Source of the DNA: Rebecca billardiae RCC1528
Lineage: Eukaryota; Protista; Haptophyta
Reading direction: 5' to 3'
Assembly (NCBI GenBank): GCA_965240325.2
Contig: OZ251224.1
Coordinates: 1,860,001 to 1,924,000 of the forward strand
DNA length: 64,000 nucleotides
Shown here: positions 33,910 through 43,099 of the stretch, one piece after another
Numbering within the stretch: the first letter of the stretch is position 1
How the letters are laid out: every line of letters starts with the position of its first letter
The notes under the pieces: model-generated
Told to the model about the DNA's origin: nothing
What the model saw: only the letters and a program-made list of their open reading frames with translations
Database searches by the model: none
Program-made: the position numbers and the translations under genes

Positions 33910-34133
33910 TTTCGTAACGCCATTCGTTACATTCAATCCACGTCCAGCTCACGCCCACAGTGTAAGATTCCAGACCACGCTTTACATAGTAGGGAATCTT
34001 GCGGACGCGACCTTTAATGAAACTCGGTCTCCACCAGCCCTGAAAATCGGCCACCCATCCCTTTTTTCCCCAAAGATCTTAATTTTTGAAACGACTCAAA
34101 CGTGATTCAAAGTGCCCGCTGCGCGGGCTCCAC
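33910..34133 (-). mobile_element. Family A terminal module, copy 3, cut off by the LINE 3' end
   Basis: GTAACG..CGTTAC, CCACGCTTTAC, GAAACTCGGTCTCC.CCAGCC.TGAAAATCG, AAAGATCTT and GCGGGCTCCAC are collinear with 13967-14207. Confidence 0.75.
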
Positions 34134-34136
34134 ACA

Positions 34137-37100
34137 TACAGTTTACTAAGAATAAGAGACGCACACAGCTCAGGCAGGCGAGATTGACGCCCGCCAACTG
34201 TCACCGCCCATGAAGCCGTCGCCGATGGTAGCGCCGCCGGAAAAAATCGTTCAGCCGTCCGCCTGCGAGGCCTGGACGAGGGCTGCGGCCGCCTCGCGGC
34301 GCGCCAGCGCCCGTCGTCCTCGCCCCACCGTCGTCCACAAAACGTCGTCGTCCGAACTCGCCGACTGGGCGCCGATGCGACAGCGCGCCGACAGGATGAG
34401 GATGTAGTAGGGAATGTAGAGCCCCACTGTCGGTTGGGGAAGGCGTGTATCAAGCGGCATGACTGGGGTAGCTTATCACACAGAAGGCCTGGCCCTCAGG
34501 TGATATGTGCCCCAGTGTGGCGTGTCGGCCTCAAAGCCGGCGGCAGGGTTCTGTTGCCCGGAGCAGGGTTTGCTGGCGCATCAGCTGCGTGGGCCGGGGC
34601 GTCCGGCTGTTTGCGTTTGCGGGCCGGGGTCGGCACTGATGCCACCCCGCCGCGCATGCTGGCCTGCATGTATGGCTGTTGCCCAAGGTCAGCCCCGGCG
34701 GGCTTCTCCCGGGCAGGCTGTGTCGGCGCGCCGGGTGCGCGCGAAGCGTCATTTTGCTGGTGTGGAGCTGCAGTCATGCCTGAGCCGCGCGTGCGGCGCT
34801 GGCACAGCCTGGCAGACTTGCGTAGTGGCGGGGCCTCAGGCACCGCAGGCGTCGGGGCTCTGGGCTGGTCAGGAGCGGGGGCGCCAGGCCAGAGAGGCTG
34901 CTGCAGGGTATCGGAATCCGGGCGGCTCCTTTTGGCCGGCGGGCCACGCCCCACCGCGGGGGGGTCGCCACGCGGCGCGACGGGTGGTGCTTGAGCGCCG
35001 GCGCTACTGCTGGCACCTCCCTGGCTACACCCCGGGGTGTGTCCAAGCGGGGGGGCGAGTGCCACCGGTGACTGGGGGCTGCCTGTGCAGGCCCTGTGCA
35101 TAGGGCGCTTGCCGGTGCCTGCAGCGGGGCTGGGCGGAGGCAGTGCAGAGCTGTCCGGCAACCGCCGCGGCCCATCACCAGCACCTGTGCCATGGTCCTC
35201 AGGGCAGTCGTCTGGCCGGTCCCTGGGCTGTTTGCCGCGCCGATTGCTTGTGGGGCAGCGCTCCCTGTCCTCGAGACCCGGTCGGCTCGGCAGCGGCAGC
35301 ACAGGCTCGTAGTGCCCGGTGCCATCAAAGTACACTGCTGCAAGAGTTGGGTCGCGCGCAAGGAGGCGTTCGCGTACCGACTGTTGCTGGCGCGGGTCCG
35401 CTGGAGCACCTGCAGGGCCCCCTTGCGGGTGTTGCCAGCGTTGGGGGTCCGTATACACTGGGTTGTTCATGTTGGACCACCGCGGCACGTGCCTATACAG
35501 CGTGCACGCCACCAGGTGCCCGACTGCATCCGAGCTCTCGGGCCTGCCTGCTGTCCCACCGGCAGGGGCAGTCTGGCTGGCGCGCGGCTGGAACACTGCG
35601 ATGTCACGCCCCATGACGGCCGCAACCGCAGGTATCATGACAGTGGGCCAGTACCTCGACGCCCCACCGGCGGCGAGCCTGCCATCGGCCCCGTAGCTCG
35701 CTGCAGCCCTGAGCGGCTCGGCGAACTCGTGCAGGGTTGGCTGGGCACCCTGCCCATGGTATGTGGCCCTATAGCTGTCAGACATGCTGATGGCCTCCAG
35801 TCCATCCGCGTCCACGAGCCCCAATTGAAGCCGGTGTGTCCGTGAGAGGTGTGCTGTGCCGAGCACCCAGTCCACAGCAGCTGCCCTGAGGAAGCGGACT
35901 GCCTGGTAGGCTGCGGTGCAGGGGCCCACTGCTGCGGCACGTTCCTCAACATAGCCCATGGCTGCCAGCAGGAGGCAGTCCCCATGCATGCAAGTAGGGT
36001 ACACAGCATGCCCCACTGCTGCCAGCAGCGCAGAGGCCGCCCCGCGCCACTGTGGCTGGACAGCAACGTAGGCAGGCATAGGTGGCAGCTGCACAGCGGG
36101 CCGCCGGCGTGCAGGGTGTTGAGAGTGGCCGGCAGCCACATCGTCGATTGGGGGGCCCGCAGTGCGAGGGGTGGAGCCTGCCGCTGCTGCCAACCGCCGC
36201 TGCTGGGCAGGGGGCCCACTCTCACCGCTATCATCCTGGTGTGCCAGGGCGTCTGCATCGGGCGAGCGGGGCCGCCGCCTGCTGCCACGCTGTGCGCCGT
36301 GCATCGCCGCGCCAGCCAGGCCAGCGTGCGCTGCCGCTGGCGGCTCAGCTGCGGCGCCCTCCGGCACCGGGCCCAGCAGCTGTGCAGGCAGGGGGTGGCT
36401 CGCCTCTGCTGGAGCAAGGCCAGGCCCCAACGCAGCGGGCGCCTGCACATCGCTGGCGGGGGCATCTGCAGCCGGCGGGGCAGCTGCTGCCGGCTGCTGT
36501 TGCAGCAGCTCATCGGGGGCTGGCGAGTGATCAGCAGGTGGGCCTGGCTCTGCCACCTCAGCAGCAGGGGCAGGCTCCGCCTGGCTGGCAGCCGCCCGGC
36601 CTTGCTTATGGAGGAGGGCCCAGTACTTATCCAAGTCGTACGCCTTGGCATACGCCGAGCTGAGGCTCAGCGCCCTGCGCTCGTCGTGGATTTTGCTGGC
36701 GGCTAGGGCCAAGGGCTTGTGGATCATCCCCGCGGCGTACGGCACCGGCTGGCCGCCAGGCGGCTGGTGGGCAGCCAGTGCTTGCTTCACAGCTGTGACA
36801 GTGGCCTCGGTCACCTTGCCAGCATAGTAGAAGGGGTGAAGCGTCGCCTGGACCGCGAGTCGGGTGGCTTCGGGCTGTGGGATGGCGCCATTCGAGGCCT
36901 TACGTATCGCAGCTCCCACCCTGTCCTCAGCGTTCCGCTGCGCGTGTGCGTGCGGGCACTGATGGAAGACGTGGTGCACGCTATCCGGCCCTGGGTTCGG
37001 GTCCCCCGCCTTCAGGCAGAATAGGCACTCTGTGCCCAGGGCATAGGTCGCCCGCGAGCTGGTGCACCGTCGCCGGACACCAGCCAGGGCCGGTGTGGCT

Positions 37101-40100
37101 GCCACAGCATCCGCATTGTAAACCAGTGCACCGACCGCGCAGCGCAGCACAAACTTACTGATGCGCTCGCGGCACCACTGGTTCTGAAGCGAGTGTGTGG
37201 ACTCGCGGACATCGCATGGGAGCGGGGTACCGCCCTGGTGGTCGGGTTCCTGGTCACTGTCGGGTCCAGCCAGTTTGAGCCTGTACTTCGCTGCTGCAGC
37301 AGGCGTGGCAGCATGTGCCTCCAGCGCAGCCCTGCACGCCCTGTCCATGACGCGGGTGCGGACCTGGTTTGGGCAGGACGGTAGCAACGTGGCAGAGCCG
37401 TGCTCCATCAGTGACACTCTGTACGGCAGCCAGACCATCGGCCCCAGTGCGAACGATGCCTGCCGGTCACCCCTGGCGACCTGCTTGCTGGCCCAATCCG
37501 CACACAGGTTGCAGACCGTACGGAGCGCAGCTTCGCGAGGGGTGCCAGGGGCATGTCCGAGCACTATGCGCAGCAGCGCTTCACATTGGGCCGAGCTCAC
37601 GCAGAAGGCGTTGTCGAGGGCCGACCACCGTGGGGCCAGGGTGTTGCCAACCAGGCGGTCCAGTTCCGCATGGCCTGCCTGTTGGTGGCGAAACGCCCAC
37701 TGGTGACCCGACGCCGGTGGGACGCAGATGTCCAGGAGCCGGAGGAGGCGCACCATGTGGGGGCTGCCAGAGAGGAGTTTGGCTGCGGTGCCAGTGCCCT
37801 GGCGCGGAACAGACTCTCCCGGGGCTGTCAAGTCCGGTCGGGCGCGGAGGGTGTGGTGCAGGGCAGCATCGCAGTCCCACCCTATGTGGGCGTGCCGCAC
37901 TCCAATAGTAGAGAGCACCTTCACTCCCAGGGTGGCAGCGGCAATCTCAGAGTTCTGGGCTGACTGCTCGCCGGGGTACGTGGCTGTGAAGATGGTGATG
38001 GCATGGCGCTCGCCGCCCGGTGTGAGGGGTAGCGCATATGCCACAGCAGCTGCCCCCTGGCCCCTGCCTGGGACGTAGGAGCCATCCACTCCGGCCATCA
38101 GCCTGTCTGTGTCAGCCAGCAGGCCGCGCACTGGCAGCCTGCCATCAGTAGGGATTTCGCGTTCGTGGGCAGCAGCCCGGTCCGCAGGGCCCAGGTGCCC
38201 GGTGAGCAGAAAGTTTTCCGGGGCGGTGAGCCAGTTGTCAACGAGCCCATCCAGCAAGGCATGGGCCAGGCGACCGCACATCCACTCCTGCGCGGGGTCG
38301 TATGCACGGAGGGCCCTCCTGCCGTCCGCTGTGAAGAGGGAGAGGACAGCTGCTGCGGCTCCCCCATTGGTGGCGCGTATCATCTGCGCGGCGGAGGTCC
38401 CACCATCATGCAGGATGCTCTCCTCCAGCATGCTCGTGTGGGCATGGCCAGGCAGGTTGGGGCCAGCCCTGGGCACTGCCATCTCGATCGTGGCACCCAC
38501 AGTCATGTCGAGGATGGCGTTGAGCCGGGCAGTCCGGCTGCTGCGCTTCCGCCGAGACAGCCTATTGGAGTACGTATCCATGATGTGCTCGACACGCGAG
38601 CCGCACACCTCCCTGAGAGTGAGGAGCGCGAGTTCACGGTAGGTGGCCGGCGCCCACCGCGCCGCACTGGCCGGGCAGGTGTTCAGCGCGCGCAGCCCAC
38701 CCTCGACAAACGGGGGGTACGCAGCAGGGGCAAACCCAGGCGAGTGCAGGCAGGCGTGCCACTCGCCGAGGGCGCTCCGGGTCAGGTGGCCATCTGCCGC
38801 CAGCGAGTTCGCAGCCTTCAGCAGAGTGGTCACCTTCTGCCCAGCATCTCTGGCCTGGGGATCCTCGGGGCCAATGCCCCACGTCTTGGCGGGGCCGCAC
38901 GCGGCGATGCGCGCGGACGCGTGCGGCAGCCCAACACGCTGCCACACAGGGCGCAGGATCGTGGTGCGCATGCCGCGCAGCTCGTCTTTGGTGAGCTTGC
39001 TGGCACTGAGCTTGTAGTCCAGTGTGGACACCACATCGTGCTGGAGGAGGGTCCCTGTCATCACTGTGTGGCAACAGGGGTCCATGGCCGCCACCCCCAC
39101 GCGCCACGCAGCTTTCTGGAGGCGCTCAGCCACTTTCCGAGAGTGCGCGCCCCAGGCCAACTCCATGTTGAGGTGGTATCCGAGGTACGCAAACGACTCG
39201 CGGTGCGCCGGGTCCAGGGTGGGGACGGTGGCCACCGCCTGGCCGGCCCGGGGGAACAGCGGGGCGGCTGGGCCGGCCGGCGGGCACGCTCGCCCGCCGC
39301 GCGGGGTGCGCGCCGGCCTGTACGCGTGCACACACTTGGCGTGATTGAGAACCATGCCGTGCGCAGCGAGGAACTTATGGAGGGCCTCGAGCTGGGCAGT
39401 GTTCTCCGCCGCAGTGGCGGCCACCAGGGCCAAGTCATCCATGTACCCCTGCACTTGGATGCGGGCTGTTGGGGGGCCTCTCTGCGGGAGGCGGGCAGTG
39501 GCATCTAGCTGGAATGTGTATCCGGTGGCGGACGTGGCGGTGAACCACTGGATGAACATGTTCATGAACAGGCAGAACTTGATGGGGCTCAGCGGGCAGC
39601 CTTGCTTGCATCCCCTCCGGATGGGCACCGGGTGTGTAAGGCCATGCGGGGTTCTAGTGACGGCTGTGGACCCTTCGTCTAGCCGATCGAGGCTGGCGAT
39701 GAGCTGCGGCGGGAACCCATGGAGGGCCAGGGCCTGCCTGAGGGACGAGATGGGCACGCTATCGTATGCCTTGGCAATGTCGCACGCTGTGATGTGCAGC
39801 TCGCGGTTGTGCCGTTTGGCATGTGCGATGGCGGCCGTGAGCGCGGCCACATGCAGGTCGCCTTGCCCGCCTGCGCGCGACGCGGCCTGCTCGGGCCGGA
39901 GCAGCCCCAGCCTGTCGCAGACGTGCTGTATCTGGTGGGCCCGGTGGGCCGCCGCAATCTTGTATATCACGCTCTGCAGTGCGATCCCCCGATAGTTGCT
40001 GAGGGCGAGGGCATCGCCCTTCTTGTAGAAGTACACAATCTCTGACTGGGTGATGTGCGCAGGGAGGGGAGAGGCTGAGTGCAGGATAGTGTTGATGCAG

Positions 40101-40138
40101 TTGACCAACACCGTCCTCAGCGCGGGCTGTGCCTCTAG
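34137..40138 (-). mobile_element. 5'-truncated non-LTR retrotransposon (LINE)
   Basis: The RT-encoding ORF begins abruptly at the RT N-terminal region. 3' UTR 34137-34495 ends in a tail found three more times in the window. Base composition differs from host genes. Confidence 0.92.
34496..40111 (-). CDS. LINE ORF2 (partial): reverse transcriptase, RNase H, CCHC zinc knuckle, OTU-like cysteine protease
   Basis: RT: NYRGIAL, DIAKAYDSV, GCKQGCPLSP, YMDD, YLG. RNase H: VDGS, NSEIAA, WDC, NLCAD (~37480-38110). Zinc knuckle CLFC...HVFHQC. OTU-like HGDCLLLA ... YWP...AVAAVMGRDIAVF ... GHYE (~35295-36010). Confidence 0.9.
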   Translation of the reverse strand: MLVNCINTILHSASPLPAHITQSEIVYFYKKGDALALSNYRGIALQSVIYKIAAAHRAHQIQHVCDRLGLLRPEQAASRAGGQGDLHVAALTAAIAHAKRHNRELHITACDIAKAYDSVPISSLRQALALHGFPPQLIASLDRLDEGSTAVTRTPHGLTHPVPIRRGCKQGCPLSPIKFCLFMNMFIQWFTATSATGYTFQLDATARLPQRGPPTARIQVQGYMDDLALVAATAAENTAQLEALHKFLAAHGMVLNHAKCVHAYRPARTPRGGRACPPAGPAAPLFPRAGQAVATVPTLDPAHRESFAYLGYHLNMELAWGAHSRKVAERLQKAAWRVGVAAMDPCCHTVMTGTLLQHDVVSTLDYKLSASKLTKDELRGMRTTILRPVWQRVGLPHASARIAACGPAKTWGIGPEDPQARDAGQKVTTLLKAANSLAADGHLTRSALGEWHACLHSPGFAPAAYPPFVEGGLRALNTCPASAARWAPATYRELALLTLREVCGSRVEHIMDTYSNRLSRRKRSSRTARLNAILDMTVGATIEMAVPRAGPNLPGHAHTSMLEESILHDGGTSAAQMIRATNGGAAAAVLSLFTADGRRALRAYDPAQEWMCGRLAHALLDGLVDNWLTAPENFLLTGHLGPADRAAAHEREIPTDGRLPVRGLLADTDRLMAGVDGSYVPGRGQGAAAVAYALPLTPGGERHAITIFTATYPGEQSAQNSEIAAATLGVKVLSTIGVRHAHIGWDCDAALHHTLRARPDLTAPGESVPRQGTGTAAKLLSGSPHMVRLLRLLDICVPPASGHQWAFRHQQAGHAELDRLVGNTLAPRWSALDNAFCVSSAQCEALLRIVLGHAPGTPREAALRTVCNLCADWASKQVARGDRQASFALGPMVWLPYRVSLMEHGSATLLPSCPNQVRTRVMDRACRAALEAHAATPAAAAKYRLKLAGPDSDQEPDHQGGTPLPCDVRESTHSLQNQWCRERISKFVLRCAVGALVYNADAVAATPALAGVRRRCTSSRATYALGTECLFCLKAGDPNPGPDSVHHVFHQCPHAHAQRNAEDRVGAAIRKASNGAIPQPEATRLAVQATLHPFYYAGKVTEATVTAVKQALAAHQPPGGQPVPYAAGMIHKPLALAASKIHDERRALSLSSAYAKAYDLDKYWALLHKQGRAAASQAEPAPAAEVAEPGPPADHSPAPDELLQQQPAAAAPPAADAPASDVQAPAALGPGLAPAEASHPLPAQLLGPVPEGAAAEPPAAAHAGLAGAAMHGAQRGSRRRPRSPDADALAHQDDSGESGPPAQQRRLAAAAGSTPRTAGPPIDDVAAGHSQHPARRRPAVQLPPMPAYVAVQPQWRGAASALLAAVGHAVYPTCMHGDCLLLAAMGYVEERAAAVGPCTAAYQAVRFLRAAAVDWVLGTAHLSRTHRLQLGLVDADGLEAISMSDSYRATYHGQGAQPTLHEFAEPLRAAASYGADGRLAAGGASRYWPTVMIPAVAAVMGRDIAVFQPRASQTAPAGGTAGRPESSDAVGHLVACTLYRHVPRWSNMNNPVYTDPQRWQHPQGGPAGAPADPRQQQSVRERLLARDPTLAAVYFDGTGHYEPVLPLPSRPGLEDRERCPTSNRRGKQPRDRPDDCPEDHGTGAGDGPRRLPDSSALPPPSPAAGTGKRPMHRACTGSPQSPVALAPPLGHTPGCSQGGASSSAGAQAPPVAPRGDPPAVGRGPPAKRSRPDSDTLQQPLWPGAPAPDQPRAPTPAVPEAPPLRKSARLCQRRTRGSGMTAAPHQQNDASRAPGAPTQPAREKPAGADLGQQPYMQASMRGGVASVPTPARKRKQPDAPAHAADAPANPAPGNRTLPPALRPTRHTGAHIT

Positions 40139-40181
40139 TCAGTAATATGACCCCCCCCGAAACTTGGTCTGAGCGTGTTTT

Positions 40182-40953
40182 GGGGTTTTTGGTAGGTGGA
40201 TTTAGGCGTCGTGAAAAGCGCATTTGAGACCATATCGCTGCCAGAGATTCGGCGTTTCTAGCGGACCTTAAGTTTATTAGGATAGTAATTATAATTAAAG
40301 ACATCATCGAAATCAAATAGGACAAAGGCGTCTGCACCTTTCTCAGATATGGTGGGCCGTTCGTGCCATTCTCCTGCTGATATATACTTTTGGTTTGCTG
40401 ATTCTATATTCAATGAGTGAAGAATCTTGGTCAGAGTCGTCTGCTCCTATTCGCGCGCTTTTGGAAAACGGTGTTTAGTAGCATCCAGGCTCTCCGTTTA
40501 AGAGAACCATCGCACTTCAAAAACTCCGAGCGTTTCAAGAAAGACAAGCGCGCAATTCATATTTCTGAATACGGATTCGTAAACTCAACTTTCGCCGAAC
40601 CCACGCCGCAGGCCCCTGTTTTGTGGGTTCGGCGAATTTGCAAACAGGGGTCACCGGGTCGGCGATTCGGCGAATCCATGGCGGCCCGATTACAAGAAAT
40701 GCACTCGCCGAATTTCGCCGAATCGCTCGCGGCGGCGTTGCGTTTCCAAACACACCGCACACGTGTGGATGCCCCACTTTGCGAACACGCGGAAAATGTT
40801 CAAGAAGATTTTTACGAGTTTTCAGTTTTGTCAAAAAAGGAATCCCGGCCTGTGATTGGTGAGAACGAAAAAGTTCCGACCACTTCTGAGATTACAAAGT
40901 TGAGAACAGAAGCTCATCAGACGATGTCGTCATTAGGACTACTTAAAAACCCC
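40182..40953. mobile_element. AT-richer non-coding segment with internal inverted repeats; possible non-autonomous DNA element
   Basis: Imperfect end IR GGGGTTTTTGGTAG / CTACTTAAAAACCCC. Perfect 14-bp IR at 40591-40604 / 40623-40636. Repeated TTCGSCGAA palindromes. Confidence 0.35.
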
Positions 40954-41461
40954 GGCGCAACCCCTCATCGTGAGTACTTGTCTTCTCGCAACTGATGAAT
41001 AGGAATGAGAGGCCTAACCTCAAACGCGCGGGCCGCGTTGATGACCAATCGAGGACGAACGCGACGGGGTGAAGAACGGCCCTATGTAAGTAAGAACCTG
41101 GAGTCTGTTCAGTCACACCAGCACGGCATCGGACTGGCACTTGACTGCCGGTCACTGGCCAGCATCGTATCACTACTTCGCGCGGACAGTCTCTGCCACC
41201 CCGGTGCCCCTGATGCCTGGGCTGCCACTCTCGGCCAGCATACTTGGTGAGGTCAAGATTCAGGCGGCTTCGGGATGCTAAGTGAGTGATTACTAAGCAG
41301 TCGTCCGAGTCGTCATTACTCATTAGTCCGTAGTCGGCGCGGATCCGAGTAAGAGTTCGGAGTAATCGGAGTTGGCAGCCGCAGGCTGCACGGTTGCGCC
41401 GCCCGCCCCGGCCTATCAAACACCATATATATATATATGCATGCATGTCGACTCGTGAAGT

Positions 41462-43099
41462 CTAGTTGTGAGCCTGATGAGTGATGATGGCGGACATGAG
41501 CGAGGCTGGTAGTGCGCCGCAGTCATCGGGCAGCCCTTGCAGCCGCGCTGCCATCATCTGCCCGCATAGCACCCCCACGACTCGTACCTTGGCTGCGTCG
41601 ACGCGCGCGCGCAGCAATGACAAGGTCCCACTTGATGCCGCCGTCTCGCCAGCATAGATTCTGTGCGCAGTGGTGAGCTTCTTGCGAATACGCTCCGAAA
41701 ACAGCCGGCGTTCTGCCGGCAGAACGTCTTGGAACGCAAGTCCAGTGCCTGCCCCACCGGCGCTCTTACGGCCCACCGTGAGAGCGCCCCTGGCAGAGCG
41801 ACTCAGAGGCCGGGCACGGGGCTCAGGTTCCAACAGAATGTCTCCACCCGTCCGAGCAGCAAGCCCATGCTCGGCGGCGCGGTGCACGATGGTGTCGTTG
41901 AATGAGATGAGCATGCTGTTCCTCACGGCCGCTGCCGACGCACCCGAGAACCTGTGGAGCAGGGCTTCATACTTGTGGCTCCATGTCAGGCAGATGATGG
42001 GGACATGCTCTCTCAAAGCGGCCACAGCTGAATGGAAGCGCGACGCGATGTGAAGCGAAGCCTGGCCAATGACAGCGTCCACAAAGCGCACGTACCGATT
42101 CTCGGTAGCCCCTGCGTTCTCCAGTGCCGCAGAAGTTGCCTTCCCTCCATCAGTGAGGCCATCATCCATCACCGTGGTGGCGAGCCCAAACTCGAGGGCC
42201 GTTGTACGTGTCCAGTACCGGTCGTCGTAATGGCCCGGGCCGTCGAACCTGCCACGCTCGTGGGCAACTAGCACGACCTGCTCGCGCCCGAAGATGGCGA
42301 TGGCTTGGCTCACCACCTCGCGGTACGTGTCAAGGTACGACGTGCCAGGCCATGCCTGCAGCGCCCTGCGGCCAAAGTCAATCGTGACCACTGGGCGCTC
42401 CAAGCTGCGCACGTGCTTGCGGAGGAACGCTGCCGCCTCAGCGGCGCATGACGCACTGAAGACCAGGCCAGGATCTGGCTCAACCGCCATCCTCGGCCGC
42501 GTCTCCACGAGGCCTTGCCCGGAGCCAGTGGAAGGCAGCGAGAGGATGTCCTGCGCCACTGCCATGTCCAACTCGTCACGAAAGTGCATCTCGTCAAAGA
42601 GCCGAAGCATCCGGCCCATGGCCATAGTCTCTGGCATATGCGCTTTGAACGAGTAGAGAGAATGCGATGCCATGTACACTCGCAGTCCAGCCCTGCGCGC
42701 GCAGCTAGCTGCATTCGTGGTGAATCTCACCATCTTCATTCCCCTGGGCGACCGACCGTAGATGTAACCTGGCGCATCGATGAAAAGACCTGGCGCGTCG
42801 CCATGCCGTGCGCGCCGGCGCAGGGCTGAGCACAGATCGTCGATGTCCCGTCGACTCCGTCGCACCAGCGCAATGGCGTGCATGTCGCCAGGGAGCAAGG
42901 ACATGTTTGACGTGCCCCCAAGCAGGGCACCCACGGCGCGCATGATGCCTTGCTCCATGGCCGTGTCGCCATAGTTCATGGGCACGCCAAGCTTGGATAC
43001 GAAGGGAGTCGTCAGCACGAACACACTTGCAGTCACCCACGAGGATGTCCTCCGTCCCCAGCTCGGGGAGTCCTCGAGTCGAGGGATGCAATGATGCAT
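41462..43099 (-). CDS. Polysaccharide pyruvyl transferase-like protein (WcaK-like)
   Basis: NYGD, FRDE, PDPG, IASRFHSAVAAL, VPIICLTWSHKY. Intronless; start uncertain. Confidence 0.75.
   Translation of the reverse strand: MHHCIPRLEDSPSWGRRTSSWVTASVFVLTTPFVSKLGVPMNYGDTAMEQGIMRAVGALLGGTSNMSLLPGDMHAIALVRRSRRDIDDLCSALRRRARHGDAPGLFIDAPGYIYGRSPRGMKMVRFTTNAASCARRAGLRVYMASHSLYSFKAHMPETMAMGRMLRLFDEMHFRDELDMAVAQDILSLPSTGSGQGLVETRPRMAVEPDPGLVFSASCAAEAAAFLRKHVRSLERPVVTIDFGRRALQAWPGTSYLDTYREVVSQAIAIFGREQVVLVAHERGRFDGPGHYDDRYWTRTTALEFGLATTVMDDGLTDGGKATSAALENAGATENRYVRFVDAVIGQASLHIASRFHSAVAALREHVPIICLTWSHKYEALLHRFSGASAAAVRNSMLISFNDTIVHRAAEHGLAARTGGDILLEPEPRARPLSRSARGALTVGRKSAGGAGTGLAFQDVLPAERRLFSERIRKKLTTAHRIYAGETAASSGTLSLLRARVDAAKVRVVGVLCGQMMAARLQGLPDDCGALPASLMSAIITHQAHN

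Follow-up and report, generated by a model that had tools for sequence, protein, structure and literature searches.

A LINE family of the haptophyte Rebecca billardiae with a C-terminal domain best read as a very divergent OTU-family protease

A truncated retrotransposon and its family

The window analysed here is a stretch of 64,000 nucleotides from the genome of Rebecca billardiae RCC1528 (contig OZ251224.1, positions 1,860,001 to 1,924,000), and it contains a 5'-truncated copy of a long interspersed nuclear element (LINE) whose protein ends in an unusual OTU-like domain. The copy occupies 34133..40138 on the minus strand (6006 bp) and is 97.9% identical by blastn to a full-length copy on contig C12. 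It consists of an open frame of 1871 codons (34499..40111 (-), with the stop codon at 34496-34498), which corresponds to the C-terminal 55% of the single open reading frame (ORF) of the element, and a 3' untranslated region (UTR) of ~365 nt (34133..34495 (-)) that is common to at least 40 copies at 95-100% identity. The GC content of the window is 61-78%, and because one stop would be expected per ~44 codons at ~67% GC, we regard the frame as real and not a product of chance. A first-pass annotation of the sequence had described a single uninterrupted frame of 1871 aa, and the ORF listing gives the same frame (34496..40111 (-)).

The 5' breakpoint of the window copy at 40138 lies inside the element, with ~4.5 kb missing from the 5' end relative to the C12 copy (blastn), and the sequence upstream of this point is unrelated to the element and has a lower GC content. 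The window copy therefore lacks the apurinic/apyrimidinic endonuclease-like (APE) domain and the first ~1500 codons, and the start of its frame is not a real start. Comparison of the flanks found no target-site duplication, short or long, around this copy, and no poly(A) was seen at its 3' end. Truncated at its 5' end, the window copy was dead on arrival and is not an intact element. The first-pass annotation had taken the open frame as a sign of a recent insertion, and the family is indeed young and multicopy.

With the C-terminal part of the window ORF as query, the source genome (72 Mb, 41 contigs) yielded at least 12 copies at 94-100% amino-acid identity, with open frames of up to 3371 codons. 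The longest copy (C12:1140224-1150336) encodes an Exo_endo_phos (APE) domain (E 8e-8) upstream of RVT_1, so that the N-terminal endonuclease which the earlier annotation proposed to look for in full-length copies is indeed present. The full element is ~10.5 kb with a single ORF, and its domains are arranged in the order short leader, APE, reverse transcriptase (RT), RNase H-like region, CCHC zinc finger, disordered Pro/Ala linker, OTU-like domain and basic Pro-rich tail. The shared sequence of full-length copies begins at C12:1140171; a 474-aa ORF upstream of the C12 copy was considered as part of the element and rejected, since it lies outside this start of homology.

The ~365-nt 3' UTR ends in all copies with ...TTCTTAGTAAACTGTAT, without poly(A), and when the 3' ends of 12 copies were compared, divergence set in immediately past ...TTCTTAGTAAACTGTAT. 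Insertion at a specific target was rejected because the flanks of every copy differ beyond this common end. In one aberrant copy (L002), similarity to the other copies ends 36 nt past the stop codon. At least 40 of 1251 first-look candidates were scored as 3' ends at 95-100% identity, as against only 9 5' ends (one subfamily accounts for 6 and a second, 80% identical to it there, for 3), and this disproportion gives the usual picture of a young LINE family made up mostly of 5'-truncated copies. RT and APE domains in one ORF, a common 3' end, variable 5' truncation, dispersed copies and the lack of terminal repeats identify the element as an APE-type LINE, as the first-pass annotation had proposed for the LINE itself, and the family, of which the window copy is a recent insertion, looks active.

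A C-terminal OTU-like domain under purifying selection

The OTU-like domain covers aa 1340-1615 of the window frame (35267..36094 (-)) and carries three long insertions relative to canonical OTUs; MAFFT alignment, a block-chain test, ESM Atlas features and the ratio of nonsynonymous to synonymous polymorphism (pN/pS) all bear on its assignment. Behind the Pro/Ala-rich stretch the translation reads, in order, MHGDCLLLA, AVAAVMGRDIAVF and YFDGTGHYE. The codon of the putative catalytic Cys1379 (35975..35977 (-)) lies in HGDC, which stands in place of DGNC and aligns with the invariant OTU Cys, and that of the putative catalytic His1600 (35312..35314 (-)) lies in GHYE, which aligns with the invariant OTU His. 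Both codons had been placed exactly by the first-pass annotation, which had also correctly noted that the Asp of the DGxC motif is replaced by His.

We aligned the domain with ten canonical OTU domains, nine of them from the source genome and one from a 65%-identical protein named Pavlovales sp. In this MAFFT alignment HGDCLLLA falls on DGNCLFRA, placing the Cys in a (D)GxC[LF]-type loop at the start of a helix; LRAAAVDWV falls on the conserved (V/L)R helix, TLHEFAEPLRAAASYG on F..Y...M.....WG, and MIPAVAAVMGRDIAVF on E(I/L).A.A......I.V. The His lies in the C-terminal hairpin, where AAVYFDGTGHYEPV matches the strand-turn-HY(D/N) element (V.VLY.GG.HYD.L), with strands flanking the His in both of the structure models described below. 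Across the element domain and the canonical OTUs, no substitution occurs in the C, R, G and H columns. For the canonical Trp the alignment leaves two candidate counterparts, Tyr134-Gly135 and, if shifted by one residue, Tyr148/Trp149 (the W of the earlier annotation). A Glu occupies the position at +2 from His1600, where OTUs have Asp, Asn, Gln or Ser. The first-pass annotation had made conservation across copies a check on its proposal, and Cys and His are invariant in the 11 copies aligned, with the Glu at His+2 replaced by Gln in one. On the evidence of these alignments, the residues predicted to form an OTU catalytic center are exactly retained.

Two statistical tests agree with this alignment, although both came after the OTU idea had arisen from the same sequence. 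A custom hidden Markov model (HMM) built from the canonical domains was applied without filters, and it scored the element above 1998 and 1999 of 2000 shuffles. In the block-chain test, position-specific blocks were cut automatically from the canonical OTU alignment only, and the collinear block scores of 33.5 and 29.0 compare with -2.8 +/- 7.5 and -7.5 +/- 7.7 for shuffles (z 4.9 and 4.7), with the canonical order kept and the real score reached by 0/1000 shuffles. When the block test was slid along the 1871 aa of the element's own frame, only windows over the OTU-like domain scored high (29), all others remaining at or below 11. Language-model features from the ESM Atlas, which are computed independently of motifs, placed OTU-bearing clusters at the top (0.94, 193 shared features), with OTU carried by 59 of the 100 nearest clusters, while exclusion of the OTU families left a best named cluster at 0.81 with 120 shared features. 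The Atlas cluster ranked first for the LINE domain consists mostly of haptophyte sequences.

We estimated pN/pS both among ten copies and between subfamily A (the C12 copy) and subfamily B (the copy on contig C17). The OTU-like domain, which is present in both subfamilies, gave 0.16 among copies and 0.15 between subfamilies (21 synonymous and 9 nonsynonymous differences), and because the corresponding between-subfamily values are 0.12 for the RT and 0.10 for the APE, it is as constrained as these two enzymes. The RNase H part gave 0.34 (A versus B), and the CCHC-containing part 0.37 among ten copies and 0.32 between subfamilies. On either side of the OTU-like domain lie a weakly constrained Pro/Ala-rich linker (aa 1176-1339, 36095..36586 (-); 0.60 among ten copies, 0.45 between subfamilies), which is prone to indels among copies, and a Pro-rich basic C-terminal tail (aa 1616-1871, 34499..35266 (-); 0.46 and 0.47) with two clusters resembling nuclear localization signals (PAKRSRP and PARKRKQP). 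The selection test called for in the first-pass annotation thus finds strong purifying selection on the OTU part. Recent transduction from a host gene does not explain the domain, as its most similar host OTU reaches 29% identity across aligned columns.

Several results weigh against an OTU assignment. A genome-wide search with PF02338 found 14 canonical OTU genes and matched no copy of the element; with the OTU-like domain as query, Pfam gave no match even at E 10, the family cut-off not being reached, and NCBIfam gave nothing relevant. Comparison with the canonical OTUs by hhalign yielded P values of 0.014 and 0.026 over the central motif only. No match was returned by phmmer against the PDB or by a word-indexed search of 5.8 billion proteins, and the sole match of an exhaustive phmmer search of 1.84 billion representatives, a leucine-rich-repeat protein, was rejected as spurious, a short low-information stretch having been matched three times. 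The Atlas recognition value for the domain, 2043, does not reach the 2300 mark, the element has His in place of the Asp of the DGxC motif, and the conservation of Cys and His spans only 94-100% identity, all copies being from one genome. The unguided AlphaFold model, built on 11 near-identical copies, reached a pLDDT of 33 and is unusable, and the OTU matches of a guided model (see below) are circular because its alignment was seeded with OTU sequences. One sequencing run of unknown kind gave short contigs over ~1/4 of the words, and no RNA evidence.

In the secondary structure of the unguided model, Cys40 lies at a helix start and His261 in a terminal beta-hairpin. The model guided by an alignment seeded with canonical OTUs has a pLDDT of 56 (core 67-75) and a pTM of 0.62; it matches only OTU structures (OTUD3, OTUD1 and OTUD5, with TM by target of 0.62-0.68), viral OTU (vOTU) structures are among its fold matches, and against Atlas OTU clusters it reaches a TM of 0.70 with a root mean square deviation of 2.8 Å over 151 residues. 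Such modeling suggests that the sequence is compatible with an OTU fold, which is not yet proven in that no HMM or unguided structure prediction confirms it. A complex prediction with the genome's own ubiquitin scored 0.00 with the alignment not used, and speaks neither for nor against binding.

Taken with the collinear blocks, the language-model features, the invariant Cys and His and the purifying selection, we conclude that the C-terminal domain is best read as a very divergent OTU-family cysteine protease of the papain-like clan. The OTU identity put forward in the first-pass annotation is upheld by these four lines of evidence and is without backing from any HMM or unguided fold.

Among the host OTU genes, a canonical one on contig C18 shares 65% identity with a protein named Pavlovales sp. 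CCMP2436. Another, at C10:1964564-1964854 (L025), has a low-complexity insertion of ~75 residues before the His strand, which shows that long insertions are tolerated in host OTUs at the position where the element's domain has one. This gene lies ~350 bp past the 3' end of a LINE copy (C10:1963818-1964209), which is probably a coincidence. Outside the genome, a scan of JGI metagenome contigs with the OTU-like domain gave no match, and with the RT and RNase H part as query only three distant APE+RT proteins were found, all without the C-terminal part.

Proposed function and relation to known elements

We consider it probable that the locus is a recent 5'-truncated copy of an APE-type LINE with a C-terminal OTU-family protease that would act as an active isopeptidase tethered to the retrotransposition machinery. 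Carried on a flexible linker of ~165 residues at the end of the LINE enzyme, the isopeptidase may act in cis to strip ubiquitin or a ubiquitin-like modifier off the element's own protein or ribonucleoprotein (RNP); chromatin and repair factors at the insertion site or target nick are alternative potential substrates. The outcome would be an element shielded from degradation, or repair steered during target-primed reverse transcription. Such a role would parallel that proposed for the Josephin domain of Dualen elements (PMC8557442) and for the OTU and Ulp1 domains of DNA transposons (PMC2836005).

A true OTU-fold protease could instead serve mainly to process the giant polyprotein in cis, for instance by freeing the RT core from the tail or leader, with deubiquitination absent or secondary. 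The single very long ORF, without a separate ORF1, and the long weakly constrained spacers between domains would suit such a role, and viral OTU-like proteases such as arterivirus PLP2 and tymovirus PRO are known to combine processing with deubiquitinase (DUB) activity. We nevertheless think it unlikely, given that most LINE ORF2 proteins work unprocessed, that no conserved ubiquitin-like (LRGG-type) cleavage motif was found at the domain borders, and that an NPGP motif ahead of the APE already offers a nonproteolytic route for separating the leader. An RGG cleavage-like site in the tail of the window copy was rejected as a candidate, as it is SGG in the full-length C12 copy.

We give a little less credence still to an OTU-derived module that is catalytically dead and kept for ubiquitin or protein binding or for structure. 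The replacement of the conserved DGxC Asp by His, the three long insertions that interrupt the fold and a divergence too great for any HMM would all be expected of such a module, but the Cys, the His and the acidic residue at His+2, which pseudoenzymes usually lose, are retained and invariant save for the one Glu-to-Gln copy, and the host OTU L025 likewise tolerates long insertions at the same places. Least credible is that the domain is not an OTU but an unrelated lineage-specific fold whose Cys, aromatic and His motifs are alike by chance, as the lack of a significant match in any sequence or profile database, the failed unguided prediction and the post hoc nature of the block and HMM tests would allow, since blocks taken from canonical OTUs only still set the real sequence above 1000/1000 shuffles and the rest of its own ORF, and the motif-independent Atlas signal vanishes when OTU families are excluded.

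An isopeptidase on a LINE protein would have several counterparts. Dualen LINEs were reportedly described by Kojima and Fujiwara in 2005. Dualen/RandI elements of Chlamydomonas, Haematococcus and cryptophytes combine APE, RT, RNase H, CCHC and a restriction-like endonuclease (RLE) with a Josephin-like protease. They share with the present element a very long single ORF with APE, RT, RNase H, CCHC and a cysteine protease of a deubiquitinase family. Among solved structures the RT of our element scores best against R2 (E 1e-11), ahead of LINE-1 ORF2p (E 4e-6), which fits an intermediate lineage. Interference with protein degradation has been put forward as the role of the Dualen protease (PMC8557442). 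Dualen is, however, defined by the pairing of APE and RLE, and no RLE was found in our element by Pfam or by PDB phmmer on aa 780-1175, in a bank that includes RLE-bearing R2 structures, nor is a PD..(D/E)xK pattern evident in the translation after the CCHC; a very divergent RLE could still be present. The protease also differs, being Josephin-like and, in Haematococcus, N-terminal, whereas the present element has an OTU-like protease at the C terminus and lacks any constrained N-terminal domain. Pfam matched no Josephin or other N-terminal protease anywhere in the full-length ORF. Because RLE and Josephin were both looked for and neither was found, we do not file the element under Dualen.

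Another precedent is a LINE ORF2p of Symbiodinium necroappetens (bioRxiv 10.64898/2026.06.17.732966), in which an OTU DUB domain is likewise fused to a LINE ORF2-type protein, in a data set that also features NPGP/2A-like motifs ahead of the endonuclease; its OTU is N-terminal and was recognized by structure annotation, whereas ours is C-terminal, behind RNase H and CCHC, and beyond the reach of HMMs. NeSL/Utopia elements (PMC4640811) also pair a non-LTR retrotransposon with a papain-like-clan protease for ubiquitin-like modifiers (Ulp1-like), but one of another family (with the catalytic order His-Asp-Cys) that is N-terminal and is found on RLE-type and not APE-type elements. In Helitron/Helentron elements and Ginger1 (PMC2836005) an OTU is appended to a transposition enzyme, C-terminally too in Ginger1; these are DNA transposons, however, with OTUs recognizable by Pfam PF02338, and the same idea, that transposition engages the ubiquitin pathway, applies to them (PMC2836005). 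The background given by the first-pass annotation, that OTUs occur in Helentrons and viruses and Josephin or Ulp1 domains N-terminally in some LINEs, accords with these comparisons. A C-terminal OTU on a LINE, or, beyond the elements named above, an OTU on an APE-type or RNase H-bearing LINE, was not found in the searchable literature, outside of which Repbase Reports lie; an earlier catalogue entry may therefore exist.

OTU proteases are also found in RNA viruses, among them nairovirus vOTU, arterivirus PLP2 and tymovirus PRO. They resemble our putative OTU domain in that the protease is embedded in a large polyprotein with which a selfish genetic element replicates, but they belong to RNA viruses and not to retrotransposons, and they have no detectable sequence relationship to the element.

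What is new in this element is the OTU family and its C-terminal position, a ubiquitin-system cysteine protease on a LINE being itself known. With regard to the undescribed lineage suggested by the first-pass annotation, the C-terminal OTU has no match in the searchable literature, but a DUB-type protease on a LINE is not new in general, given Josephin in Dualen, Ulp1 in NeSL/Utopia and the N-terminal OTU in Symbiodinium. We regard it as possible, though rather doubtful, that the element is the founding member of an undescribed and perhaps haptophyte-specific LINE lineage that captured an OTU independently at the C terminus of ORF2, with an enzyme required for retrotransposition through deubiquitination of the RNP or of repair or chromatin factors at the nick. 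If so, LINEs would have gained a protease of the ubiquitin system for a third time, by convergence, and in a family that is tractable because it still looks active. To our knowledge, none of the ubiquitin or ubiquitin-like modifier protease domains of LINEs has been characterized biochemically.

Proteases of this kind have been gained repeatedly (Josephin in Dualen, Ulp1 in NeSL/Utopia and in MULEs, OTU in Helitrons, Ginger1 and RNA viruses), a pattern suggesting that the ubiquitin pathways of hosts either hinder transposition in general or serve it as a general tool. The family described here offers a young multicopy LINE with an intact full-length copy and an OTU-like domain constrained like its RT and APE. 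It would also indicate that an OTU domain can drift beyond the reach of HMMs and yet keep its catalytic skeleton, a point relevant to the annotation of transposable element proteins in poorly sampled protist genomes.

Other domains and features of the element and locus

The RT spans aa 30-314 of the window frame (39170..40024 (-); Pfam RVT_1, E 1e-25) and its translation carries YMDD-type motifs. An RNase H-like region with DGS, E and D motifs follows at aa ~661-880 (37472..38131 (-)), identified from its motif pattern together with ESM Atlas features, for which clusters of RNase_H (PF00075) and zf-RVT were found at 0.93 with a recognition value of 2940. There was no HMM match to this region in Pfam or NCBIfam and no PDB sequence match, so that the RNase H named by the first-pass annotation is supported by motifs and language-model features and not by an HMM. 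The CCHC knuckle of the same annotation is borne out as a CxxC...H...C zinc finger at aa 1029-1054 (36950..37027 (-); C1029, C1032, H1046/1047 and C1052) that is read from the translation and is invariant in the copies. Its pattern is similar to the zf-RVT type, and zf-RVT is among the Atlas matches.

In the full-length copies the first ~700 codons (C12:1140224-1142329) are near neutral between subfamilies (pN/pS 0.8-1.0), and constraint starts near codon 701. Despite this neutral evolution they remain open in several copies, and they may represent either a disordered leader that is translated or an untranslated 5' region that is open by chance. A frameshift interrupts the C17 copy near codon 505, and the copy on contig C11 carries an insertion of ~2.6 kb. 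Five residues ahead of the start of the APE lies GEAKNPGPG, an imperfect 2A-like NPGP site (C12:1142630-1142656) that is kept in both subfamilies; 2A-like peptides have been reported ahead of LINE endonuclease domains (bioRxiv 10.64898/2026.06.17.732966). A 40-codon segment (KHKWHLRVKH...EDAT) is duplicated in tandem in the C12 copy and single in the C17 copy.

At the 3' end, an inverted partial 3' UTR abuts the 3' UTR of the element head-to-head in some copies, and in others the last ~50 nt are repeated in tandem, two or three times, beside the 3' end. These arrangements (C3:359528-360285, C14:1258397-1259014, C8:3348895-3349376 and C3:1931584-1932074) could have arisen by twin priming or template switching as the copies inserted. 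At C15:1688476-1688992 lies an old, frameshifted piece of the OTU-like domain, ~46% identical where it aligns, which shows that the family has resided in the genome for some time; this piece covers neither the Cys nor the His and was set aside as evidence for deep conservation.

The DNA directly upstream of the truncated copy in the window (40139-41460) has a lower GC content (~55%) and is AT-rich in patches. Beyond this stretch, a 545-aa ORF lies on the minus strand at 41462-43099 (-).

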